Shown piece after piece: positions 15,655-43,126 of a stretch of 64,000 nt of DNA. The stretch's first letter is position 1, and each line of letters opens with the position of its first letter. Position numbers and translations under genes: made by a program. Source of the stretch: Oculina patagonica (lineage: Eukaryota); contig NC_135758.1 of assembly GCF_052425735.1 (NCBI RefSeq), forward strand, positions 28,024,001 to 28,088,000, read 5' to 3'. A model generated the notes under the pieces. The model saw only the letters and a list, made by a program, of their open reading frames with translations. It was not told the origin of the DNA and searched no databases.

Positions 15655-16680
15655 ATGATGTTATCGACATCTACAAGATGTGCCGACTTTCCTCCTCCTA
15701 CAAGCCTCTCCTACTCCACAGCATCCTTCTCAGTTTTTCTCACCATCCTTACTATTCCAGGCAACTTCCTTGTGTGTTTAGCCATTATAAAGGATCCCTT
15801 CCGTAACTTGAAAACACCATTCAATTATTTCCTGCTGAGCTTGGCTGTAACGGACCTAATGGTGGGAGCGATCATGGACCCAGTTTCAGTGGCGTTTCAC
15901 ATCAGCGAAGCACTTCAACTTAACGTCGTGGACATCAAAGTCCTACACATCTTCTATTTTATCTTAAGCACGGCGTCTATTTTGACACTCGCCGCGTTGA
16001 CAGTGGACAGATATATTGCCGTCGCTACGCCGGTGAAGTATAAAACAATGATTACATCCAGGCGCGCCATTGTGACATCGGTGTCGATTTGGGTCGTAGC
16101 GTTGGGTTTCTCCTTCATCTACTTCAAACTCGGTTTCATATTCTACTCCTTCATCTTTGCCAACACCGCCGTGTTCAGCACATTTGTGGTTCTCATCTTT
16201 GTTCATGTAGGCATCCTTAAACGCTTGCGTGAACGATCAAAATATTGGCGGGATCGAAGAGCAGGGGAATGTACCGAATCCGACAAACAGGAAAACAGAA
16301 ACAATCTCGTCAACACAAAAAGGGAAGGCAAGGCAGCCAAGGCATTGATGATTGTTCTTCTCGCCTTCTTCGCTTCGTTTACACCCGCTTGTGTCATGAT
16401 CTACTTGTTAAATTTTTGCTCAAACTGCAGCTGTTTGATAATCCACGTGTTGCGGGATTTGCAGTTTTTAATCGTGCTGTGTAACTCGGGTATCAACCCA
16501 TATCTATACGCATGGAGGCTTCCTCAATTCAAAAGAGCTTTTTACAAATTTCTTCACCTGAAGTCTCGAGGCAAAGTGAGTGACATTACCACAACATCAA
16601 CTCATGTCGTAGGCAGGCCGGACGACCAAACGCCTGAGAATCTTGCCGACAATGAGGGTGAAAAGATATCCAGCGTTTAA
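15655..16680 (+). CDS. Rhodopsin-family (class A) orphan GPCR, melanocortin/adenosine (MECA)-like, paralogue 1
   Basis: 341-aa single-exon ORF with seven hydrophobic segments; GN (TM1), LAVTD (TM2), DRY, TM4 W, NSGINPYLY. Confidence 0.93.
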   Translation: MMLSTSTRCADFPPPTSLSYSTASFSVFLTILTIPGNFLVCLAIIKDPFRNLKTPFNYFLLSLAVTDLMVGAIMDPVSVAFHISEALQLNVVDIKVLHIFYFILSTASILTLAALTVDRYIAVATPVKYKTMITSRRAIVTSVSIWVVALGFSFIYFKLGFIFYSFIFANTAVFSTFVVLIFVHVGILKRLRERSKYWRDRRAGECTESDKQENRNNLVNTKREGKAAKALMIVLLAFFASFTPACVMIYLLNFCSNCSCLIIHVLRDLQFLIVLCNSGINPYLYAWRLPQFKRAFYKFLHLKSRGKVSDITTTSTHVVGRPDDQTPENLADNEGEKISSV

Positions 16681-21089: not shown

Positions 21090-22118
21090 TTATTTAACGC
21101 TGGATATCTTTTTATGTTCATGACCGGCACGATACTCGGGCTTTTGATTTTTCGGCTTGTCTACGCCATGTGTACCAGTGGGAACGTCGCTTATTTTACC
21201 TCGTGGATTTAAATGGAGAAATTTGTAAAATGCTCTTTTGAACTGTGGAAGCCTCCATGCGTACAAATATGGGTTGATACCCGAGTTACACAGCACGATT
21301 ATAATCCCCAAATCCCGCAACCAGTGGATCATCAAGCAGCTGCAATGTGCGCAAAAATTTAACAAGTAGATCATAACACAGGCGGGTGTGAGCGAAGCGC
21401 AAAACGCAAGAAGAACAATCATCAATGCCTTGGCTGCCTTTCGTTCTTTTTTTGTGTTGATGAGGTTGTTTCGGTTCTCTTGTTTGTCGGATTCGGAACA
21501 TTCCCCTGCTCTTCGATCTCGCCAATACTTTGATCGCTCACGAAGGCGTTTAAGGATGCCTACATGAACAAATATAAGAACTGCAAATGTGCTGACGACA
21601 GCGGTGTTGGCGAAAACGAAAGAGTAGACGATAAAACCGAGTTTGAAGTATATGAAGGAGAAGGCCAAAGCTGCAACCCAAATTGACACAGAACTCACAA
21701 TGGCTCGTCTGGATGTGACCATTATTTTATACTTCACTGGTGAAGCTACCGCGACATATCTGTCAATCGTTAGCGCGGCTAGTGTTAACATAGACGCTGT
21801 ACTCAAGATAAAATAAAACATATGAAGAATTTTGATGTCCACGACGTTAAGTTGAAGTGCTTCGTCGATGTGAAACGCCACTGAAACTGTGTCCAAAAGT
21901 GCTCCCACCATAAGGTCCGTCATAGCCAAACTCAGAAGAAAATAGTTGAATGGAGTTTTCAAGTTACGGAAAGGATCCTTTATGATGGCTAAACAGACAA
22001 GAAAGTTGCCTGGGATGGTAACAAGAGCGAGAAAAACTGAAAAGGATGCTGTGAAGTAGGAGAGACTTGTTGGAGGGCGAACGGTTGCACAGAGACTGTT
22101 GGGCGTCGGGAAGGTCAT
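21090..22118 (-). CDS. Class A orphan GPCR, paralogue 2
   Basis: 342-aa ORF, closely similar to paralogue 1 along its length; LAMTD, DRY, NPYLY. Confidence 0.93.
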   Translation of the reverse strand: MTFPTPNSLCATVRPPTSLSYFTASFSVFLALVTIPGNFLVCLAIIKDPFRNLKTPFNYFLLSLAMTDLMVGALLDTVSVAFHIDEALQLNVVDIKILHMFYFILSTASMLTLAALTIDRYVAVASPVKYKIMVTSRRAIVSSVSIWVAALAFSFIYFKLGFIVYSFVFANTAVVSTFAVLIFVHVGILKRLRERSKYWRDRRAGECSESDKQENRNNLINTKKERKAAKALMIVLLAFCASLTPACVMIYLLNFCAHCSCLMIHWLRDLGIIIVLCNSGINPYLYAWRLPQFKRAFYKFLHLNPRGKISDVPTGTHGVDKPKNQKPEYRAGHEHKKISSVK

Positions 22119-25670: not shown

Positions 25671-26688
25671 ATGACATTCCCGGCGCCCGACGATCTATGT
25701 GCAGGCGTTCCTTCTCCAAAAAGTCTCTCCTACTTTACAGCATCGTTTTCAGTTTTTCTCGCTCTGGTTACCGTTCCAGGCAACTTCCTTGTCTGTTTAG
25801 CCATCATAAAAGATCCCTTCCGAAACTTGAAAACACCATTCAATTATTTCCTGCTGAGTTTGGCTGTAACGGACCTACTGGTGGGAGTAGTCATGGACCC
25901 ATTGGCAGTTGCATTTCACATCAACGAAGCACTTCAACTAAACGTTGTAGACATTGAAATTCAGCATAGTCTATATTTTATCTCAAGTACAGCCTTTATT
26001 TTAACACTAGCTACTCTTACAATGGACAGATATGTGGCCGTAGTTTCATCAGTGAAGTATAAAACAATGGTTACGTCCAAACGCGCCATTGTGACATCGG
26101 TGTCAATTTAGGTAGCGGCGTTGGGCTTCTCCTTTATATACTTCAAAGTCGGATTCATCGCGTATTCCTTCGTTTTTGTCAACATTTGCGGTTCTCATCT
26201 TTGTTCATGTAGGCATCCTTAATCGCCTGCGTGAGCAATCGACATATTGGCGAGATCGAAGAGCAGTTGAATGTACCGAATCCGACAAACAAGAAAAAAG
26301 AAACAACTTCGTTGACACGAAAATGGAACGCAAAGCAGCCAAGGCATTGGTGATTGTTCTTCTCGCCTTTTTAGCTTCCTACCTACCCGCCTGTGTTATG
26401 ATCTACTTGTTAAATTTTTGCGCACATTGCAGCTGCTTGATGGCTCACTGGTTGCGGGATTTGGGGATTATAATCGTTCTTTGTAATTCAGGTATTACCC
26501 GTACTTGTACGCATGGAGGCTTCCACAGTTCAAAAGCGCTTTTGTGAAATTTCTTCACCTGAAGTCAAATGAATTTGAATGACGGTCCTGTATGTAACAG
26601 AAATGAACAGAAGATGTAAAAAGTTGTAAAGTCTAGTTTCTTAAAGACGGCTCATGAACATGAAATCGAGATATCTAGCGCTTTATAA
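25671..26688 (+). pseudogene. GPCR pseudogene, paralogue 3
   Basis: ATG 25671 (MTFPAP, like paralogue 2); TM4 Trp codon changed to TAG at 26109-26111; ~17-nt deletion near 26184; 1-nt deletion in the NPxxY codons near 26497. Confidence 0.9.
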
Positions 26689-27927: not shown

Positions 27928-28896
27928 TCAATGTTTCCTAAAAATATTGCCTCGAAAGGCGCGTTGAAGATCTTCCACATTTAGTTCCGAGATTCTCCCA
28001 TTTTGCTTCCAGCCACACAGAACACTTTTGAACCCATTTCTGTAGTTTGAACTTTGAAATGCGCAAACTATTGGATTAACACACGAGTTACTGTACAGCA
28101 ATGTAAGAGAGATTTTGTAAAACAGCAGTGGGCTCTTTGCCGTTGCGGCATAAATTATTACTGAAGATATGTAAGGCGCAAAACAAGCAAGAAATACGGA
28201 TGTTAAAATCGACAGAAGTTTTACAATTTTTCGCTTGGAACGAGCGTCGTCTTCGCTCGATGCTGCTGACTCTGACATTATGGTGTTGCTAAAATACAAT
28301 TCTTTTATCAGTTTAAAATAACAGAAGCACACAATAAACAGGGAAATGACCATCGGCATAGCAAGAAACGCAAAATAAAAAGTTCCACCCGGTATTTCGT
28401 CCCATTTATCTACACATGTCTTTGATTGTTCCTCGTACTCAATGAAGAAAAGAAACGGTATTAAAACGGAAATACAAAACAGCCAAACTCCAGCGATCCC
28501 GTATTTGACGTTGTTTGTGTTGAGTCGAAATCTTGTGCTCATTGGGCGAAGTAGAGCGTGGTACCTTTCGAGGGAAATAACTGTTAGTGTCACCCCTGAT
28601 ACAGATAATGTCAGCATCGGCAGGCTGTTTTGGGTTACAAACTTGCAGAGAAAATTGCCAAGGTTGCCGCCGGGATGATCCAAGAATTTGAAGACCTCTG
28701 CTGGTATAAGCCACAGAAGTGTGAGGAGATCGGCTACGGCTAAATTCGTTAGGAGAAAGTTGATGGTTGTATGCATGGTATTGGTTCTTCGCACGACCGT
28801 AATAACTAACGAGTTTCCAAAAGTTCCGACCAGTATGATTAAAACATGGATCGGCAAGACGATCAAATCCATGGCTGAGTACGGTGGGTAGGACAT
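27928..28896 (-). CDS. Class A GPCR, neuropeptide (RFamide/galanin/NPY-type) receptor-like
   Basis: First ATG at 28896 (MSYPPYS); GN, LAVAD, TM3 CK, ERY, ECL2 Cys, CFAP, NPIVC. Confidence 0.9.
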   Translation of the reverse strand: MSYPPYSAMDLIVLPIHVLIILVGTFGNSLVITVVRRTNTMHTTINFLLTNLAVADLLTLLWLIPAEVFKFLDHPGGNLGNFLCKFVTQNSLPMLTLSVSGVTLTVISLERYHALLRPMSTRFRLNTNNVKYGIAGVWLFCISVLIPFLFFIEYEEQSKTCVDKWDEIPGGTFYFAFLAMPMVISLFIVCFCYFKLIKELYFSNTIMSESAASSEDDARSKRKIVKLLSILTSVFLACFAPYISSVIIYAATAKSPLLFYKISLTLLYSNSCVNPIVCAFQSSNYRNGFKSVLCGWKQNGRISELNVEDLQRAFRGNIFRKH

Positions 28897-31065: not shown

Positions 31066-32338
31066 TCAATTTGTTCAGTTTTTGATCATTCGAGTTAATA
31101 ATCGATATTTAATTTTTCTGAAAGTGATCCCTTATTTCCCCTTGTCAGTGCATTGCTGCTATCAAAAACATTGTTTATTATGAATCTTCATCTTGATGGC
31201 AGAATAAGCTCCTTATCCTAACGTCCTAACGTCCTTGCATGAAGGATTAGTTGAAAAGTAGTTCACAGCCGGGTGGAGGAAAATTGCTTTCAGTGTAGTT
31301 TGCTTATATTTATCAGGCCGTTGTGTGTCTTTCCTGTCTTTCTGAAACTTTGGTACGAATGATCAGAACCTGCCAAGAGAAAAGTATAAGCAAAAGATAT
31401 ATATGGAAATTAGTGGTAAACGTTCTTGGCCTCTAAAGAGGGACCTGAAAAGGGGAAGAGGGGTTAAATCCCATTTTCCAGCCCAAATTTGCCCAAATCC
31501 CATTTCCCAGCCCTAACAGTTTTGCCTAAATCCCAGTCCCATTGTTTTGTGATTCCCAGACGCAGTGACCTAAATCCAATTTTTCCAAGGAAAATTTGCC
31601 CAAAACACAGTTCTTATTCTACCCCTTCAGGCCTCTCTCTAAATTAAAGTTAATTTTCAGCGTATTGGTAAACATAGGCGAGTAAAAGATCTTATCAAGT
31701 ATATTAAATCGAGGCCGATAAACCCTTCCTGCCAATGAAAACAAATCGAACGCTGGTGAAAGTATAAGGAAAATAGGGTGTTTCTTACTTTAGACAAAAA
31801 TGTTCTTCGTATATTATACAAATTAATGTATCTTTCTCAGCCTGCTATAGCGATTGCTAGTACGAGCGCTTCATAACTCAATTTCAAGAGCTTTACTAAT
31901 TTTGCTTTGGCAAAATCACAAATATTTTATGAATTGACAAATATAAATCCCTTCTCTCCATGATGTTGTTTTCAGGTTTTTATTTTTCTTAATTAAAAGC
32001 AGACCTTTATTATAGCAATGAAAATGGATGCGCATATAAATGCATTATCATTCCTATCATTCATATCGGCTCCGACTCTCCACGCGCGTTTACAAAGAAA
32101 ATGGACGCTACATGAAAGTCTCACGAAGACTTATGCTATTTCGGAAATCGTTTGAATTGTGTTTACGAATAACAGCAAGCTCGACAGTTTTAAAAATCTA
32201 ACTTAATAGTCTCCGGCAATGCAACTACTAAAAGGTTGTGTGATATATCTATACAACTGAACAAAAACAAACATTTTCGCGAACTTTTGAATAAATAGCG
32301 TCGAAAAGGACCGACGATTTAAAGTTTCCATTCTTACC

Positions 32339-32536
32339 TCAATCAGAAATTGTATTTTCTTCTGTAGTTTCGGTTTCAATAGGAGGACGTACAGTTTCAC
32401 CAGTTTTCCACATCATACGAAGTGGACTAGTTCCAATTAGTTCGACAGAAAGGCCGTATACAAGTCCAATATACGAGACAAAAACAAGGAATTGAACCAA
32501 CGGTGTGACGTCCATATTGACGATGGGAAGAATCAT
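32339..32536 (-). CDS. Candidate single-pass membrane microprotein A (~65 aa; start uncertain)
   Basis: MILPIVNMDVTPLVQFLVFVSYIGLVYGLSVELIG...; stop followed after 1 nt by donor GTAAGA, 81-nt intron 32337-32257 ending GTTTGTTTTTGTTCAG, downstream AATAAA (32011-32006). The frame stays open upstream, with another ATG near 32641. Confidence 0.45.
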   Translation of the reverse strand: MILPIVNMDVTPLVQFLVFVSYIGLVYGLSVELIGTSPLRMMWKTGETVRPPIETETTEENTISD

Positions 32537-33477
32537 ATCTGTTGCTATACTTGGAGGAGTTGAGGATTGTTTTGACCACAGACTGTGCGCGGCTTCGTGT
32601 TTTTTAGAAACTTGGCATTCGACAAAATATTTTATTTTCATCAACGTGAAAAGTATTACTATACCAGTAATTACTGTATACAGCAAACCTGTTTATTTTC
32701 AAGTTTAGTTTGTACAGTTGAGAGAATACTGACTTTGAATTATTCTTCTGTGGAATAAATGCATTAATATTCTCAATACTGCACCAAACGTCAGTAAAAT
32801 CATAATTTTGACAAAGAATTTATTGTTAAAAGGACAGGTACCAGTTGAAAACGTTTTAAAATTTAATTAGAATTCAAATTTATTGAATTATCTGTTTTAT
32901 TATTAATGCTTCTTCGAGAAAATAGTTTTTTGTTTTGTTTTTTGTTTTTCCATTATTATTTTCTACAAGCCTACACCAAATTACTTGACATGATACCAGC
33001 TAGCATACTGACTGCTCACGGCCTTCCTCATTTTTTACAATTGTTCAAAGCGAGGAAAGAATCGCTTGATAACTGGACGCCAGCGCAAAACAGGAGGCGA
33101 GATGGAGTTTTGGGGCTTGATAACATGGCGATCTCCAGCCCGGTTTTACCGGGCTGAGATTTCAGCTCGGCTTCCAGAAGAAATCTTCTTAAAAAGTGTT
33201 GCGATTACATGAAGAAATTTTCATCCCGTTTTTTTTTAACTGGGCTGGAAATTTCAACCCGGGCAGACGTGCTGAACAACATCATGTAATCGCATTCAAA
33301 TTTCAGCCCGAGCTGAAAAGTGAGCTTACGGGATGCGCAGTGATGGTTTATAACGAAAGAAAATGGCGGCCACCATAGTTTTTTTAAGTTTTAAAATTGT
33401 TTAACCCGCTTAGCCTTTCTAAAAGGTGTGGTGAACCCTGGTAGTGAGGGCCATCAACATCTCATCTAAATCTAATA

Positions 33478-33755
33478 TAAATAAAGACGCATTTTTCAAC
33501 AATGACACGAGCATGGGAGAAAGAAAAATTCTGAGTCCCCGACGGGAATCGAACTCATGGCCTCCCAGATACCGGTTGGGGGCTCCAACCAACTGAGCTA
33601 CGAGAGACTCGTAGTGAGCTGGGCCATTTACTAGGTTGATATGTGACACGTCACATATCAACCTAGTAGATGGCCCTAGTAGATGGCCCGTCGGGACTCA
33701 GAATTTTTCTTGTCCCATGCTCGTGTCATTGTTGAAAAATACATCTTTATTATTT
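33478..33755. mobile_element. Foldback element containing a tRNA-like segment
   Basis: Inverted arms (TTTTTCAACAATGACACGAGCATGGGA...AAAAATTCTGAGTCCC) around a central 27-bp-arm palindrome; minus strand 33610-33533 has A-box TAGCTCAGTTGG and B-box GTTCGATTCC. Confidence 0.8.
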
Positions 33756-36540
33756 ATCACCGAGCTCAAACTTTACCATCTTTATTATTTACTATCTCAT
33801 CTAAATCTCTTTACGATGTCATGTACATTGCCAAGCCAACTAGTAAGAAGAATCAAGCTGAAAATCATCACTTTATCTTAGTAATACTAAAAAGAAAACA
33901 AATATCATTTCAGAAGACCACAGTGAAAAAACCCCACTTTTCTGACGGGTGCAGAGGAAACATAACCACACCGATTGACTTTCATTTGTTTTCTCAGCTT
34001 GACTGAAATATATAATAATATGCAACAGTTCTTTTTTTCCGTTTGCGCTTCTTGTCAAAACAGACCTTATTTTAATAGCTGTCATACTTGTTGGTTTTAA
34101 CGATTTAGTCGTTAGTGTTTTTCTTCTTGTTTTGGACAAAGTGCCCGCCTGTAATAATAGGACATTGTAAATGAATTCTTAGATAGCATTTTTTCACGAA
34201 AGATTAATTTACAAATAAGAGCATGTTTTTACTGCTTTGATCATTTTGCAATGTGTGGTTTAATTTCTTTAAAAAATTGCTGGTTTTAGGAACGTCCGCA
34301 TGGTTTAATTTCACAACCGTTTTGTTCTACCGGTGATTTCAGACATAATTTAAGTTACAACAACGGGCAAATGCGGAAAAAGGAAGTCGGTCGGCAAACG
34401 GAAATGTTTTTTAGGAAATGTTAGGAAAGTACTGAATCTACAAAACCGTTCGTTGTAAAGCTTCCAAAGGCGAGAGCCGACTAGGAAGAAAGTGATCTCC
34501 CGTTCTTGGTTTGACAGCTGGTCAAGTCATTCATATAGGTCAAGTGGCGAGCTAGGTGGTTTAAGTACTCTTGAAGAACAGTTTTTCCTCCTTTAGGCAA
34601 CTTCCCGTTTTGTCAAGGCATGGTGGTCGTTGATGGGCAGAAATTCTTAGGAAAGTTATAACTTATAGCAACTGAACCGCACAAGATCGGGAAATTTAGG
34701 AGTTAGTTCACATTTGGTCAAAACCATCGCATTTAAGAAAAGATGATTACTTGTTCCCCGCGCAGCATTTGTGTTAAAAGAAAAACTTCTTTCCCGCCTT
34801 TTTGTCTTTTCCCCCCTTAAACACAATAATACCATAAGTACCAGTTTTCTTCATCTTAATGCTTCAGCCGATAAACTGATCTAAAGGCTGATGCACGTGA
34901 TATTTCCGCGCGTATAAAGTCGCTAAAAGGGACCAGCTATCCAGGGAACTCTATGCTCAAACTAGACTCCGGGGGTTAGCTAGCCTATAGGCTTTTAAGC
35001 CCGGGCCTACAAATTTCTTACCCTATCGCATTTTTAAAATGTGTAATAGAGAGCAATTCAGGCTTAAAAGCACTTTCAAGAGGAAATGGAAAGCAATATG
35101 CATCATAAATATCGCAACTAATATAGCTTAATATCGCAATTGATCAAGACCCAAGCACGTAGAAACTCGGGTGACATCTTGAGTAGTCAAGTGATAGGTA
35201 TATGTCGTTAAGGCAAGTGCGTATATATGTTTAGCAATGAGTGAAAGTTGGTCCATTCTCTGTAACAAAATGTCAAAATACAGTTTTTGCCAAACTGCAC
35301 TTTTGGAAGTCTTCACTTATCGAGAGCATGTCCCCGGACCCCCCGTCCCCCCCCAGCCCCCCCAGAGGCGACTAGGCCCACAAATCCAGAAAGCTGGCTA
35401 CGCCCCGAAGTAATTAATCAGTGCCCACGATCTTAATTGCAGTAATATAGCGGTTGCCTTTGGATGATTTCCATAACTCTACGCGGACCACGCTCCACCA
35501 AAGATCGTGAACGAAAATGTGTAGAAAAAATATATGCTTGAAGGACATTTTAATTTCTTTTTACCATAGCTTGTTGCTTGACTAAGCGCCTGGAGTTAGC
35601 TATTCTTACCACAATTGTTTAATTCCAAATATAAATAATATAATATTCATTAATTGATAAATTCAAGAGAAACACATCCACACAAAACTGTAGATTTTGT
35701 TTGCATATAAAAGTGTTATCTTAAAGCTCAAACATCTACCTTAACAAGTCTAGATTCTGACTTGCTCACCTAGGAGCGGTTTAAAAAACTGAATTTCCTT
35801 TTTCTCCTCTGGATAACATCATAATTTTTGGTATTATAGAAACTTTAAATGCACAGTTTTACAATGTATAAGCCAAACACTGATTAACTATTGCAACAGA
35901 GTTCTTTTGTTAAACAGATGATAAACTCGAATGACAAAACTAATGAGGCTCAAATATTTGTTACCGGTAAATATCACTGTAAGATCAAATTTTTAATTAC
36001 AAGACTGAAAATATATGTACCGGCCAAAACGAAATTATTTACTTTTTTGACCTTTTTAAAGTTTAAATAAAGATAAAAATTAAAAACTGCGTCCCCTACG
36101 TATCGACCTGAAACTTTTTCTTACATTTTCTTGTCTAGCCGTTGTGAATTATCTCTGGTAAAATTTCAACAATCCTTGTGTCAATACACCCTGCCTCTGC
36201 CAATAAAACATCTCTCTTTTTTCAAAGGCGTCACTAAGATATTCAACCGAGATTTCTGCGATTGATGACCCAAAGACATTGCAAAATTGTTATTAAAAAC
36301 ATCATTTCCAGGAGTTTTTCCTTATGGGCAAGTTTTAACAATGTTTGACATTCATCATTGGTTATTAGTCTACCCTCACATTTCTTACTCGCTTCACTCG
36401 AGAACTTTTAATTGGTAAATTTGGAATTTTACTTTCTGCTGAATAGCTTAGTGAAATAAAAGTTGATTTTGTGAGCTCATTATCAAAAGAACGATCAATT
36501 AAAATGACTCCACTGAAAAAAAGAAACCTTATTCAACTAA

Positions 36541-36768
36541 NNNNNNNNNNNNNNNNNNNNNNNNNNNNNNNNNNNNNNNNNNNNNNNNNNNNNNNNNNNN
36601 NNNNNNNNNNNNNNNNNNNNNNNNNNNNNNNNNNNNNNNNNNNNNNNNNNNNNNNNNNNNNNNNNNNNNNNNNNNNNNNNNNNNNNNNNNNNNNNNNNNN
36701 NNNNNNNNNNNNNNNNNNNNNNNNNNNNNNNNNNNNNNNNNNNNNNNNNNNNNNNNNNNNNNNNNNNN
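36541..36768. other. Assembly gap
   Basis: Run of N. Confidence 1.
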
Positions 36769-36774
36769 TGGAAA

Positions 36775-36883
36775 ACGCGATGGACTAGCATCACATCCAG
36801 GGAGGAGTAGAAATACTCCTGGTTGCTTCATGCTACGGAAACCGCCATTACGCTCGTATGCAGACTTTACCTTTACCCTTACC
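36775..36883 (+). mobile_element. 3' part of a tRNA-derived SINE
   Basis: GCGATGGACTAGCATC...GGAGTAGAAATACTCCT...GCTTCATGCTAC with (TTTACC)n tail; resembles the 3' part of the SINE at ~62980-63180. Confidence 0.6.
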
Positions 36884-37585
36884 ACACGCCTAAAGAATAA
36901 ATATGAACCCCTTTTAAGAGTTAATAGCGTCCCAAATTAAGAGCATTTTTCTATATATCTAACATTTTTTCAATGAATCATTTTTGAAAGACTCTTAACA
37001 ATACTCAACCATATCAAAGTTGAAATAATTAGAAGGTCTTTTGAGATGCAATATTTAAGAAAACTGGAAACTGTATATAAACAATAAACTTATGAAACAG
37101 ATGTTTGCCTGTTACCAACGATTGTCAAAATTTGAATTTAAATTTATATTATTTGCATTCTAAGGGGGACGCTTCACACGGCAGCCAACACTTCTAACTG
37201 CTCTTTGTTTAGATGATAGGGAAATGCTTCCCCTGATTGGTTAAAACAAATGAGTATATCTTAAGAGGGATGCAGGGAAACAACTTTCATGCTGACAAGA
37301 GTCAGATATTACAGATGAAATTTTAGAATTTATCCAGCGGTTGCAGGCTTACCCTAACTACAAGGATAACCGAATCGCCTGGGATATCTTTTGGAAGAAA
37401 CTGAGCCGCTTAAACCTCAAAAACAACATTTTTTGTGGAATAAGCATTAACTTTCGAAAACAGCAACGACATGGACAATCTTTGATCTTGGGAACGGCTT
37501 CTATAGTTTAGTTCGCTGGTGCACTCGATTATTGTCTTACTAAATTCAGCGTTTAAGAGAGTACAAGAAGTTAACCGAGTAAATA

Positions 37586-37780
37586 ATGTCTCGTTATTCG
37601 GATGACGAAGTAACTTGGGAAGTTCGCCTGATGGTGACTTGTATCGTCGTATTTTACACTATTGCTGGAGTGTTCTTGGTTCGAGAATGCTGGCCACTCG
37701 TGAAAGATATCTGGCGATCGTATTTTCCAGAAGAAAAGAAGATAAAGTCTCCGGATTTAAAAACTAAGAAGACAATCTGA
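37586..37780 (+). CDS. Candidate single-pass membrane microprotein B (64 aa)
   Basis: A at -3; upstream TACTAAATTCAG branch/acceptor; acidic N-terminus, TM LMVTCIVVFYTIAGVFLV, Lys-rich tail; AATAAA at 38048. Confidence 0.55.
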   Translation: MSRYSDDEVTWEVRLMVTCIVVFYTIAGVFLVRECWPLVKDIWRSYFPEEKKIKSPDLKTKKTI

Positions 37781-38266
37781 CAGGGTAGCTGTAAAGTTTT
37801 GAACTTCTTCCAGTTTGACAAAATGGAAACTGCAGTGAATATATACTGTATATAAACACAAACTTTGTAATACTGGTCGCTGTGGCGGCGTCGTTAACAT
37901 GCACTTGTCGTGAACACCTGTAAACTGAATTTAATTCTTAGATGTGAACTATACTCTGACTTTCAAACCTCAATGTCAAATTTGAAAAGAAAAAGGTTTT
38001 TCAATTGTTTGTACTTGTAGAAGAAGCTAAGTGGGGGAAATGAAAGAAATAAATATATGTACCAATGCTCTCGTTCTGGTTGTAAGTTAATTGTTTGACG
38101 CTGACTATTTTCAAACCCTTCTGCTTGTGCTGAAGCCTTCGTCAGCCTTTATCGCATTTTATTACCAAAGAGAGCTTTATGAAAACGAGTTCAAACTTAA
38201 CGCATATTTAGTCATTTTTCCCGACTTATCTTAAAGTTTTACAAAAACTGTCCAAATCATCCCCAC

Positions 38267-38373
38267 CCGTCCGTTCGTTCTTTTGTTTCTTCGTTCATTC
38301 TTTCGTTCATTCTTTCGTTCGTTCTTTCGTTGTTCGTTCGTTCTTTCTTTGTTCGTTCGTTCGTTCGTTCGTT
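38267..38373. repeat. (TTCG/TTCT)n low-complexity repeat
   Basis: Degenerate tetranucleotide array. Confidence 0.85.
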
Positions 38374-39570
38374 ACGTTTTAAGCATTCTTAGAAAAAAAA
38401 GGTATAAAATCGTTTGCAATTATAATCGAAATTATAAAACTGCGTTTGATTTCCGAATAGGAAAGTAGTGTTTTGCTTTTGAATATTCATATGATCGTTG
38501 CCGATTTGGCGAGGCAAATTCGAAAACTTCCCCCAGATTGAAGATTACTCGACTCACAGCTTAATTGTGTTTACTTTAAAATCAAAATAGTTTATTTAGA
38601 GAGCGTTTTGGTACGCCTATACACAAAGTTAAACAAATAAGTCCAAAAATTGCTAGCTTAATGTTTGCAAGATCATTTCATTTTTGTTTTTTCTTCGTTT
38701 TTGTGCACTAATAGACGCTTAAGCCTACAGGACTCTCTTTTTGACACTAAGAAATATAGATAGATAACACAGTGCTTCGTATTCTTTTACCGCCAGAGAT
38801 GTCTTCAGCTTAAACAAATATTTTACTTTATTTCTCACTTCTCGTCTTCGAAACGTGAGACCATCTGGGCCCGAGCGTTTCTTGATATAAAAAAGTCAAT
38901 TAAAATTTGCTTTAATTTCCTTCAGCTTTTGCTGGAGCTAATTTGTCGACTTTTCGGGAGGAGACTTTTGTTTTATGGCTAGAGCGTAGAAATTGTTCAC
39001 TTCTATTGTCCAATCTCCTGTAGACTATTCTTAATCTGTTACTCCTGACGTCGTTGTGTAATTATGGGCATTAGCATACGTGCATTTGACGCGAATAAAT
39101 TTCAACCTCAGCTGTCTTCATTTTCAAAAAAGCTCTGGTTTAAAGAATTGTTCAAGTCCTTCATCTTTTAAATTGTAAGTTTTTGTTTCTACTGTTTTCG
39201 TTAACTGCGTTTTCCTTGTTTGCATTTTAACGTGTTAAAACACCTTTCAAAAGTAGAAAGTTGTTTATGTTATAAGCGTATGGCACACCAATTATAGAAG
39301 CTGCATTTGAAATGTTATCTTCTAAAGAAAGGTTTCTTGTGTAGCTTGGAAATTTAATTTGTTTTTCTCTTTTATAAATTCGTTGGAGATTTATTTTATT
39401 TTACTTTCCGAGCAACGAACTATCCACGGGTAAGGTAACGAATCCGATCACATCAACCGACATCGGAACGCGCCGGTCGACACACCAGCGACCCATCTTC
39501 GAGCGAGAAGAGTAAAACTCAATTATCGTCTCCGTCCGGTTTAATTTTCTTTCTTTTTATTTCAGGCGAG

Positions 39571-39771
39571 ATGGAAATCCACAGTGACTACATTATCTAC
39601 TTCATAAACTTCGTCATCTACGTTGTTCTTTGCGTTATGGTCATCAAACAGGCCAAGAAAGACATCTTTGCACCAAAGAAAAAAGAAGAGCCAGTTATGT
39701 GTCCAACCCACGGATGTCCATTAGATATTCCGCAGACCTATAAAGAACACATGTACATCAGGCGATCTTGA
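39571..39771 (+). CDS. Candidate single-pass membrane microprotein C (66 aa)
   Basis: Strong acceptor TTTCTTTCTTTTTATTTCAG 5 nt before GAG-ATG-G; upstream donors GTAAGT (39175) and GTAAGG (39430); TM YIIYFINFVIYVVLCVMVI followed by KQAKK; CPTHGC motif. Confidence 0.6.
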   Translation: MEIHSDYIIYFINFVIYVVLCVMVIKQAKKDIFAPKKKEEPVMCPTHGCPLDIPQTYKEHMYIRRS

Positions 39772-40448
39772 ATCCTGATATACACTACGATATCGGTAGT
39801 TAAACTGATTAAAACTGGATTTCTTGCTTAAACACTAAGCTTGCCCTCTGAAGAGACAACAAGAAATTAAAATTGAAACCTGACTGTCATGTTTCGATGT
39901 ATTATTTTGACGAGTTTGAGGAAAGGTGTAAAAAATATTCATAAACTGCTGATTTTAATTTTACGGTTGGAAAACTTCCATATTTCCATATTTTAAAGGT
40001 AGCAACAAACATAACATATGAATGATCCGTTTTGCTTTTTTAGAATAATTGCGTATATCTAAAACTCTGATTCGGTTTACCGAAAATAAGAAAAAAAATT
40101 CGCCCAGGATATCAGAGTTGTCTATAACAGAAAACTTATAATTTGAAATAAATTTGGCGGGCACACGAACTATACTTCCAAATTGACTTTTGTCTTAGAG
40201 GTTCCCCCACAGAGGTGAACTGCATTAACATCGAAATAGTCACAATATTTTGTTCTCGTTGCAAGCTGTTTTCAGAAGAGTCAGAAGAGTCTCTCTCTCA
40301 AAAAAACGTTCTCCTGATCTTGAGTCCTAAAAACACAATGTTACATAAAGGTTTACTGCTATTTTGTTACAGTTTGTGGCAATAAAACAGTCTAAAATGC
40401 GAGGCAAAATCTTGAACTAAAGAAACACAGAATCTTGCTAATTGCTAA

Positions 40449-40652
40449 ATGTGCTGTAAGCTTTATTTTAACTACCAAGACATAGAAAGCCCCAAGAGTT
40501 TTGCTCCCTTATATGTGTCCCTGCTTCTTTCAGTAGTTTTTGCTTCTTTTGTTGGTTGCTATACATTTTTAAAATGTCGGATTAGAGAATATGCAAACAC
40601 AACAAGCCAAAGTCCACCATATCTAAGAAATGTTTTTATTCTCAAGCCCTGA
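40449..40652 (+). CDS. Candidate single-pass membrane microprotein D (67 aa)
   Basis: TM LYVSLLLSVVFASFVGCYTFL followed by KCRIR; upstream acceptor TATTTTGTTACAG (~40372); weak start context. Confidence 0.3.
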   Translation: MCCKLYFNYQDIESPKSFAPLYVSLLLSVVFASFVGCYTFLKCRIREYANTTSQSPPYLRNVFILKP

Positions 40653-41793
40653 GAAAAAGAAAGGAAAAGTGAAATCATAGATTCATCGGTCGAAAGAGTC
40701 GCAAGCAATAAACGTCGCTGGGTTTTACCTATTTATATAAACGGCCCTGTTTCAAAGGGTCCAGCCTGTGTCTTACCATACGGCAGTCGGCGGTTGAAGT
40801 CTCGAACGGTGAAACTTTGTCCCTTAAACCGAATATTCTATCTAGTGAATTTGCCAGACAATGCATCACGCACTTTTTTTATCCAGAAAAGGTTACAGAT
40901 TTATAGTTATAGCCACTATGACAAGCTCAATCTCTATATCAAGTTATGTGCCGTTTCGCTGAATATTTGCGGCATACCAAATTGACATTGAGGGCAAAAG
41001 GAAAACATTTTTTTCTATGAAAGGGACGATGCCTCATATTGTTACTTCTGCTAAAAACTGAAATTATATGAAGTTAAAACGTGGCTATCGACCATTTTCA
41101 CGCTGAAAATTTTAATAGACTATTTTATTTATGTCCATACAACTAGAACTTATATTTTCCAAGTAAACCAGATTTTTTTTATCAGGAAGACACCTACCAT
41201 TTTCTCTATCCTTTATTTATTCTTAAAATAAATATTGCTTTGTGGCTGACTGAGCTTGTTGTTTCATCAGCAGGTTATATAAATATATAGTCGACACCTT
41301 GCAATATGTTTTGGACTGTGCTATGTTTAATCAGCACGCAAGTTGAGAAACATCATTTTAAAACTGCTTCGAGTATCAGTATATTTTATGACACCCATGA
41401 ATAAAGAGCTCTGTTTTATTTTTATACCTTTTCCTTTGCCCTTTTCCAGTATTAACGAATGAATTCTCCATGAAGATCTCTCCATATTTCGCATAGTAAC
41501 AGTTCGGAGAATCTAGAAATTGAAATTGTTTATCCTTCATCACGTTGTAACAGCAAAGGCCAAAAAAATGCCTTTGCTAGCCAGAAAAACAAATATTTGC
41601 TGGAATGAAATATCAGTCACCCAGTATGCCTTGTTTGAACAGTCTCTTAACTGTAAACTTTTGTTGCACAAACTTAAAGCTTTCTGGCAGCTAATACAAT
41701 ATACCAACACGGGTGAAAAAGGCACTTCTTAGCTATAAAAGTAGATATTATCTAGTATTTTTTATTACTTGCTTGAAAGCAACTAGCAGTAAT

Positions 41794-43126
41794 ATGTGGC
41801 TGATTATTACCGCCGCCCTGCTCGGGGCAGCTTTCTCTAGCAATCCTGAAGGTACTTGGAAAAAATCTTTTACCTACTTTTAATCTTGTTGATAGAACAT
41901 TGAATCAAAAATTTCATTTGAATAGAATGAATCACTGAATCTAACCATCTTGGACAACTAAAACCAACCAACAAGCTTTAGCTTGTTTTGTTTTTGTCTT
42001 TTTCAGAAAGCTACCATATTCGGAAATTTTTTGTACAATTTGCGTCCGAGTTTTTTTTTTTTTTCAATCTGTAACCTGCGCTGGTAACTATAGTTATTAA
42101 AAAATGCGTGTTTGCTTCGTTTATATAAAAGACGTTCAAAATATATGAGGGAGTTATGACTATAAAAGAACTAATATTTTTCCTTTCTTTACAGAAATAT
42201 ATAGGAGACTATTGACAAAAAATTAAACTGAAGTTTTCCTTACTATAATATAGAAAACATCGGAGCTTGGGATCCTAACTTGTTTGAAGGGGACATGTTG
42301 CTGACAGCTGAACAAAGGGCCGCCGCAGAAGCTGGCCAAGACGTGGATGCCCCAGTGTCCCGGGGCTCCATAAACAGAGGGCTGTGGAGAGAAGGAGTTT
42401 TAGTTTACAGAATCGACAGCAGTCTGAGTAAGTCGAATCTTCATCAAATTTCCACTAATTTTCACTTTTCCTATCTTGCTGGTACCCCCCAGCATAATGT
42501 CGCCGGTACCCATTTATACACCTGGGTGGAGAGAGGCACTTTGAGAGTAAAAAGTCTTGCCCAAGAACACAACACAATGACCCCGGTCAGGCCTCGAACC
42601 CGGACCGCTCGATCGGGAATCCGGCGCACTAACCATTAAGTCGCCGTGCCTTCCTTTATGGAGGACAATTAATAACGCTTAATCGTTCCGAAGTCCTTAA
42701 GTTCCCTAAAAAATGGGATTTTTTCAGAAACTGCTGCATTTGTGCATGCATCCCTTTAGTGAACATCCTGTTTTTGCCATATTACTTCATCTCAAATTTT
42801 CTTTATTTTGGAGGATTTGACATATAAGGAACTTGTATTCAGTTTCGGGTTTTCTTTATCCCTATGCACCCTTACTAAACCTTTGAATTCGTAGTCGTTT
42901 CAACTTGTATTTCTAGGCTATTTTTAGTGACTTCACTAAAATAATGTAATTTGCACTTTAATTAGGTCGCAATAGCAGAGCGATGAGTGCAATTAATGCT
43001 GGAATGAGAATGTGGAGTGAAAACACCTGTATCAAATTCAGAAAAGCTAGTGGAGGTGACAGGAGTTTCGCCAACTTTAAAAACGGAGGAGGGTGAGTTA
43101 CAGGGACGCATTTATCAATCACCTCT

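Follow-up and report, generated by a model that had tools for sequence, protein, structure and literature searches.

Three small conserved coral genes for predicted single-pass membrane microproteins beside a receptor gene array of Oculina patagonica

The window analysed here is a stretch of 64,000 nucleotides of Oculina patagonica (NCBI RefSeq assembly GCF_052425735.1, contig NC_135758.1, positions 28,024,001 to 28,088,000 of the forward strand), which is cnidarian-type eukaryotic DNA with 36-40% G+C and in which a first-pass annotation had proposed a cluster of three or four microprotein genes (open reading frames ORF1 to ORF4) next to genes of G protein-coupled receptors (GPCRs). Judged by their evolution, ORF1, ORF2 and ORF3 appear to be genuine conserved genes for single-pass membrane proteins of about 65 residues. 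It is likely that they are distinct genes, each present in a single copy, with ORF1 encoded on the minus strand and the other two on the plus strand, that their one-helix products would act by helix packing, and that ORF4 is a chance ORF. All four ORFs are present at the positions described, with 65, 64, 66 and 67 amino acids (aa), and each has a single hydrophobic stretch with a Kyte-Doolittle 19-residue mean of 2.0-2.6, but only the first three hold as genes, which have a conserved and selected reading frame, whereas ORF4 has no transcript cover and is broken in a relative. The ORFs occupy the 13 kb that separate the last GPCR gene, GPCR4, from an astacin gene.

Coding signature and transcription

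At the orthologous, collinear loci of other corals, the start and the stop of all three ORFs are kept. The ratio of nonsynonymous to synonymous substitution rates (dN/dS, NG86) against the window is 0.14-0.41 over ORF1-3 at a dS of 0.23-0.82, and among the relatives it is 0.04-0.61; the frame of ORF4 is not conserved. The corresponding ratio of proportions, pN/pS, is 0.21-0.35 in the true frame versus 0.84-1.97 in the two shifted frames, which contain 3-8 stops, and the excess of synonymous changes in the true frame is significant for ORF1, ORF2 and ORF3 alike (Fisher p = 1.3e-4, 1.9e-6 and 4.5e-7, respectively). The ORFs are 86-92% identical to those of the closest genomic relatives, with no gaps or gaps of 3 or 6 nt only, while most of the 300-nt flanks are 61-72% identical with many gaps of odd length, amounting to 2-17 frame-breaking indels per 300-nt flank. 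The upstream flank of ORF1 is exceptional in this respect, with 91% identity and two gaps.

It has to be considered that T-rich non-coding DNA yields hydrophobic ORFs by chance, or that the conserved parts are a non-coding RNA or an untranslated region (UTR) and are never translated. Such an origin does hold for ORF4 and for a further hydrophobic ORF at 33873-34085 on the minus strand, which was rejected as a chance ORF, as both have no RNA cover and no conserved frame, and 22 of the 79 ATG-ORFs of at least 60 aa in the whole window have a 19-residue hydropathy mean of at least 1.6, most of them being clearly non-genic. In the span of the cluster, five ATG-ORFs of 60-120 aa reach a hydropathy mean of at least 2.0 versus 0.16 expected from dinucleotide shuffles, a null that is too lenient because shuffling destroys T-rich runs; as two of these five, ORF4 and 33873-34085, show no ORF conservation and are non-genes, counts based on composition are indecisive. 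For ORF1-3, however, the frame-specific synonymous excess (p = 1e-4 to 5e-7) and the conserved starts and stops speak against chance, at a dS of 0.5-0.8 they contain none of the frame-breaking indels that abound in the flanks, and conservation of a non-coding element would not produce a three-base periodicity. An untranslated or accidental nature of these three is thus hardly credible and, at the level of sequence evolution, already refuted.

The coding sequence of ORF1, including its TGA stop, is found at 32339..32536 (minus strand) and is supported by orthologues, dN/dS and profile matches. In L015, L016, L017, L028 and L029, an orthologue covers the full length of ORF1 and keeps its start and stop, and the dN/dS against the window is 0.26-0.35 at a dS of about 0.6. 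The N-terminal 38 residues are conserved, with the core MI[IL]P..N.D[VI]T..VQ...F..Y.G..Y.LSVE..G..P, and are followed by an acidic and variable tail; invariant in family 1 are M1, P4, N7, D9, T11, Q15, Y22, G24, L25, L29, S30, E32 and P38. A word search recovered 41 clusters down to 54% identity, and a profile search of 1.84 billion representative proteins gave 25 representatives at E up to 1e-3. The Nematostella vectensis protein XP_032237908.2 (LOC116618412, P0096) matches the profile with E = 5.5e-10, and the hypothetical Acropora cervicornis protein KAK2555324.1 (P5673_022954) belongs to the 90% cluster of P0085, which matches with E = 1.0e-19. With ORF1 these two share the core MI[IL]P..N.D..W/P.VQ…Y.G..Y.L..E, a helix at the same position and the donor site described below, but their tails are longer and the Acropora gene has a second coding exon; no function has been described for either. 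An in-frame upstream extension of ORF1 (ATG at 32641) was rejected, as it is not conserved.

Directly after the stop of ORF1, a 5' splice donor G/GTAAGA (32332..32338, minus strand) is conserved, as all close orthologues have GGTAAG or GGTAAA at this place. In other lineages the frame is open past the donor, where prokaryote-style gene calls run into the intron (…GKFV = GGTAAGTTTGT), and in the Acropora gene model and two proteins from Logan contigs the family-1 frame is spliced at this donor into a second exon of 17 codons. Unlike the Acropora gene, the lineage of the window has its stop directly before the conserved donor. The splice and transcript evidence for family 1 comes from Acropora and not from this genome, in which read cover was examined over 36800-42750; the Logan contigs of L028 and L029 are collinear with the genome (genomic or unspliced) and contain no splice information on ORF1. 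An AG that may serve as acceptor is located 2 nt before the ATG. ORF1 was also considered as the N-terminus or an upstream ORF of GPCR4, which was rejected because the Acropora model ends in the short second exon without any receptor, and because GPCR4 decays in relatives.

The coding sequence of ORF2 including the stop is 37586..37780 (plus strand), and orthologues, dN/dS and an RNA block support it. It encodes an acidic N-terminus, one helix, an invariant juxtamembrane E.WP.VKDIWRSY, which does not change even in distant lineages, and a basic tail. One called protein cluster contains ORF2 and twelve further loci were found by tblastn or hidden Markov model (HMM) search, the orthologous loci being those in L016, L017, L019, L020, L022, L023, L025, L026 and L030-L035. 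The dN/dS against the window is 0.16-0.22, and in near-relative contigs ORF2 has 6 substitutions, all at third codon positions, of which 5 are synonymous while the sixth replaces E by D.

Transcripts were assessed from three informative runs, which are Logan contigs with three organism labels. Their cover forms sharply bounded blocks at 37222-38041 (ORF2), 39566-40364 (ORF3) and 42252-42429 (an astacin exon), with zero depth at 38392-38988 and 40382-41774, and this blocky cover together with the GT..AG joints 39174>39566 and 41849>42252 indicates that the contigs are of complementary DNA (cDNA) origin. The ORF2 block (37222..38041, plus strand) is unspliced over its span. Contigs from all three runs, each of a different organism, cover it, on either side only repeats are covered, and an AATAAA follows at 38048-38053. 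As the contigs are unstranded, the strand of the ORF2 RNA is deduced from the ORF and this poly(A) signal.

The coding sequence of ORF3 including the stop is 39571..39771 (plus strand), with support from clusters, dN/dS and cDNA. Exon 1 is non-coding and its 3' end lies at 39145..39174, where a contig of run X1 joins 39174 to 39566 across a GTAAGT donor; the 5'-UTR intron of 391 nt (39175..39565, GT..AG) has a pyrimidine tract and a CAG acceptor, and exon 2 (39566..40364) contains the coding sequence and the 3' UTR, with contigs of X1, X2 and X3 ending at 40351-40364 and an AATAAA at 40381-40386 just past the last covered base. The spliced form has an in-frame TAA 12 nt before the ATG. ORF2 and ORF3 thus appear to be transcribed, as cDNA-like contigs of three runs contain both, and the intron of ORF3 is shown, while ORF4 has zero cover. 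The gene-like signals that had been noticed by eye were borne out, since the cDNA joint confirms the ORF3 acceptor 5 nt before the ATG, and the donor behind the ORF1 stop is conserved and is a coding splice site in Acropora.

Also the protein of ORF3 is highly constrained. Its first 35 residues are almost invariant (23 of 35 strictly so in 15 sequences) and comprise a short acidic N-terminus, an aromatic-rich helix and KQAKKDIFAP, and the tail contains CP.HG. There are 18 protein clusters with 70-98% identity and the same stop position, many of which were called with TGA read as W, so that the stop sits at the same place; the only exception to the kept start and stop is the copy of L019, which is six codons shorter. 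The dN/dS against the window is 0.14-0.41, and in near-relative contigs two of three changes are synonymous and frame-breaking indels (1 and 5 nt) start only downstream of the stop. An AlphaFold2 model predicts one helix over residues 3-32 with a pLDDT of 78-95 and a low-confidence, unstructured tail. In two distant lineages, a paralogue of ORF3 is found between ORF1 and ORF2 (L025:8148-8333 and L026:7400-7585, both on the minus strand), which is 33-39% identical and keeps M.[IV]H.D.I.Y and CP.H, the C-P-x-H thus being kept even there. Such a paralogue was not found in the window outside its assembly gap, and it is also absent from the gap-free close relatives L016 and L017.

Relatedness and predicted membrane topology

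The first-pass annotation had suggested, speculatively, that the ORFs could be an undescribed family, with faint shared motifs behind the transmembrane helix. These motifs are not significant, and a common family is not detectable: profile comparisons of the three families with hhalign gave probabilities of 6.1%, 0.15% and 10.2%, that of ORF2 versus ORF3 being 0.5% with broader alignments, and six-frame searches and HMM scans of the own genome recovered for each family only its own gene, with no paralogues and no cross-matches. One could still assume that ORF1-3 are ancient tandem duplicates of a single ancestral gene that diverged beyond recognition, as they share architecture and size and are tightly linked, as tandem duplication does occur at this locus (the ORF3 paralogue in L025 and L026), and as the ORF3 acceptor 5 nt before the ATG resembles the candidate AG 2 nt before the ATG of ORF1. 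With hhalign probabilities of 0.15-10%, with only the hydrophobic helix aligning, and with each scan finding nothing but the own gene of the respective family, such a common descent is unlikely. By these comparisons, ORF1-3 appear to represent three separate, unrelated and uncharacterised orphan families that are confined to Hexacorallia, family 1 reaching sea anemones and families 2 and 3 being found in several diverged stony-coral lineages.

No member of the three families carries a name. Pfam-A gave no credible match, neither to the window proteins up to E = 10 nor to any aligned member up to E = 1, the best scores in the ESM Atlas were 0.79-0.85, which is chance level, and profile searches of the PDB gave no credible match either (best E 0.5-0.9). 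The expectation that standard annotation would miss the genes holds only in part, as family 1 is annotated in two species, Nematostella vectensis (uncharacterized protein) and Acropora cervicornis (hypothetical protein). A literature search found no paper on LOC116618412/KAK2555324.1 or on cnidarian microproteins. The products are new, unnamed, taxon-restricted single-pass microproteins, one family of which is already in databases as an uncharacterised protein.

The acidic N-terminus and the basic segment behind the helix, described for all four ORFs, are found in ORF1-3 across their families. The N-terminal flank of each family is short with a net charge of -1 to -2, the helix has about 19-23 residues with a Kyte-Doolittle 19-residue mean of 2.1-2.4, and the first 15 residues behind it have a net charge of +1 to +2. 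The positive-inside rule is an established predictor of topology, and by this rule the acidic flank and the basic post-helix segment predict an N-out/C-in orientation. Each protein would thus insert as a type III membrane protein, with its very short acidic N-terminus facing the exterior or the lumen, and the basic juxtamembrane segment and the tail in the cytosol. Invariant columns cluster in the helix and the juxtamembrane part of all three families, and the helix region of family 1 contains the invariant polar residues Q, Y, S and E. Tightly conserved helices with fixed polar or aromatic positions are typical of microproteins that bind larger membrane proteins, such as FXYD, KCNE, the regulins and MRAP. 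As the helix and the residues following it are most conserved, the most likely mode of action would be that they pack against a larger membrane protein or complex, the microprotein being a small regulatory or structural subunit; a role as mere anchors or secreted peptides seems unlikely from the conservation pattern.

Secretion deserves some attention, as the hydrophobic stretch is N-terminal and could be a cleaved signal peptide, in ORF1 with small residues (…YG/LS) as a possible cleavage site, and as precursors of cnidarian peptides can be short, so that the products might be neuropeptide or antimicrobial precursors. Signal peptides usually drift, though, whereas in each of the three families conservation is highest in the hydrophobic stretch and the residues preceding it. 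Moreover, the N-terminal region is acidic and not basic, with the basic clusters following the helix, the helices span 19-23 residues, and the tails are variable or of low complexity without repeated processing sites. Small secreted peptides are therefore quite improbable.

Among known systems, FXYD proteins, KCNE proteins and the SERCA regulins are comparable in that a conserved membrane helix binds a pump or channel, which is the mode of action suggested for ORF1-3, but ORF1-3 have no Pfam match to FXYD, KCNE or phospholamban-sarcolipin and no F-x-Y-D motif. The regulins (phospholamban, sarcolipin, myoregulin, DWORF, sarcolamban) are tail-anchored with a cytosolic N-terminus, and the predicted arrangement of ORF1-3 is the opposite, with the helix being N-terminal. 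Stannin and vertebrate SMIM proteins resemble them in having 50-100 aa, a single N-terminal helix and a cytosolic tail, and are mostly of unknown function. An SMIM38 cluster is the best Atlas neighbour of ORF2 with a score of 0.80, a score that shuffled sequences reach a third of the time, and SMIM43 (Pfam) is touched by two family-3 members with E = 0.09 only, which shows no homology. MRAP/MRAP2 and the RAMPs are likewise small single-pass membrane proteins, and the genes described here adjoin GPCR genes; the window proteins have no Pfam match at E up to 10 to these families (which we take to be PF15183 for MRAP and PF04901 for RAMP), ORF1-3, with their N-termini of 6-14 residues, have nothing that corresponds to the antiparallel dual-topology dimer of MRAP or to the large ectodomain of RAMPs, and the adjacent GPCR is dispensable in relatives.

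Some points weigh against three transcribed genes for helix-packing membrane proteins. That the three informative runs are RNA is a guess, although the splice joints argue for it, and the one confirmed poly(A) run, a small one (X23, 3.5 M reads), has reads on repeats and on the astacin exon but none on ORF2 and ORF3. The topology and the binding of partners are predicted from the amino acid sequences, and the conserved linkage may merely reflect slow rearrangement of these genomes.

ORF4 and the surroundings of the genes

ORF4 (40449..40652, plus strand) is located downstream of the ORF3 poly(A) signal and was excluded. In every run used it lies within a region of zero RNA depth (40382-41774), a six-frame search of the own genome found no homologue, and it diverges like the flanking DNA, with 66% identity, 6 frame-breaking indels and a stop in the only alignable relative (L022). 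The missing RNA cover and the broken frame in the nearest relative mark it as a chance ORF.

The array beside the microprotein genes contains intronless class A GPCR ORFs at 15655-16680 (plus) and 21090-22118 (minus), a third class A copy at 25671-26547 (plus), which is split into ORFs of 146 and 74 aa in different frames and is probably a pseudogene or the result of an assembly frameshift, and GPCR4 (27928-28896, minus), which is also class A and intronless. On the other side follows the multi-exon astacin gene, the first exon of which ends at 41849 and the second of which is 42252-42429. A conserved upstream exon region (window 41543-41928) contains the end at 41849 that is joined to 42252 with GT..AG in run X3, and this joint places the true start of astacin at least about 400 nt upstream of the first long astacin ORF. 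There is also one retroelement-like ORF of 1908 aa in the window.

None of the ORFs spans or touches the assembly gap at 36541-36768. ORF1 is 4 kb away from it, RNA cover begins 454 nt and the ATG of ORF2 lies 818 nt downstream of it, and ORF calls running through it are strings of X. A partial inverted copy (36777-36844) of an interspersed repeat abuts its right edge. This repeat of 173 bp is SINE- or MITE-like, has at least 4397 first-look candidates in the genome with copies about 90-92% alike, and shows a very high depth in transcript contigs; a further copy, at 42482-42654, is inside an astacin intron. A 48-nt inverted repeat, also MITE-like, has arms at 33480-33527 and 33704-33751 that are 90% complementary and 176 nt apart, which accounts for two ORFs that mirror each other on the two strands (33419-33661 and 33636-33881). 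A microsatellite (TTCGTTC/TTCTTTCG)n at 38270-38375, which separates the genes of ORF2 and ORF3, draws unspecific read depth, and a repetitive FFRS ORF at 38283-38468 stems from it. In the relative L015 (10804-11979), a gene of a DDE_Tnp_4 (Harbinger-type) transposase with a Myb-like neighbour is inserted just downstream of the ORF3 orthologue.

Linkage to receptor genes and meaning of the cluster

Close relatives keep GPCR4, ORF1, ORF2, ORF3 and the astacin exons in collinear order. In the distant L025 and L026, in which ORF1 is 57-63% identical, ORF3, ORF2, the ORF3 paralogue and then ORF1 on the other strand are found within 6.3 kb, with order and orientation kept, followed by a GPCR, and the pair of ORF2 and ORF3 is found again in L035; in L027, ORF1 is present and there is no ORF2 or ORF3 within 10 kb. 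The GPCR beside ORF1 is an orthologue of GPCR4 in L026 (78% identical, same strand) and a GPCR1-like gene in L025 and L027. The GPCR4 orthologue of L016 (2511-3022) has several stops, and that of L029 (3079-3456) has lost about 250 N-terminal codons, while in both cases ORF1 is intact and constrained. As GPCR4 is intact in the window and in L026 and decayed in L016 and L029, this points to a GPCR array that turns over by birth and death, next to a microprotein cluster that remains stable. The receptors had been termed melanocortin-like, which is a loose label at best, since the closest solved structures are somatostatin, galanin and opioid receptors for GPCR4 and adenosine and amine receptors for GPCR1; the neighbouring GPCRs are thus of two subtypes, neither of which is specifically melanocortin-like.

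This neighbourhood had led to the idea that the microproteins are accessory subunits of the adjacent class A GPCRs in the manner of MRAP or RAMP. It fits this idea that ORF1 is followed by a GPCR gene 3-4 kb downstream not only in the window but also in two distant lineages (L025, L026), and it is well established that GPCRs can have single-pass partners (MRAP, RAMP). An accessory function for these receptors is very unlikely nevertheless, as GPCR4 is broken in L016 and L029 while ORF1 is constrained, the adjacent GPCR differs among lineages with two subtypes, L027 keeps ORF1 without ORF2 and ORF3 within 10 kb, no MRAP or RAMP match appears in Pfam even at E up to 10, and linkage is weak evidence where the whole block including astacin is collinear. 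A complex prediction of GPCR4 with ORF1 gave no answer (score 0.00, no controls) and speaks neither for nor against binding. Drawn from the gene neighbourhood, the accessory idea is an unsupported speculation that is somewhat weakened by the decay of GPCR4. There is likewise only a slight chance that the three genes (four in some lineages), although unrelated, are kept together by joint work, their products being co-expressed subunits of one membrane module that possibly tunes the adjacent, fast-turning-over GPCR array; if this were true, cnidarians would have arrived independently at the principle of MRAP and RAMP.

Membrane microproteins have been recognised as a class but are poorly catalogued, and no cnidarian examples were found in the literature searched. 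The locus described here adds three real genes, with an evolutionary signature for all of them and cDNA-like contigs for two, the helices of which are unusually conserved and the linkage of which persists across diverged coral lineages. It also gives a calibration for the picking of small hydrophobic ORFs by eye in AT-rich DNA, which yielded three true genes and one false one among four, with one more false ORF in the span. As family 1 spans corals and sea anemones, it is amenable to study in the genetically tractable Nematostella.

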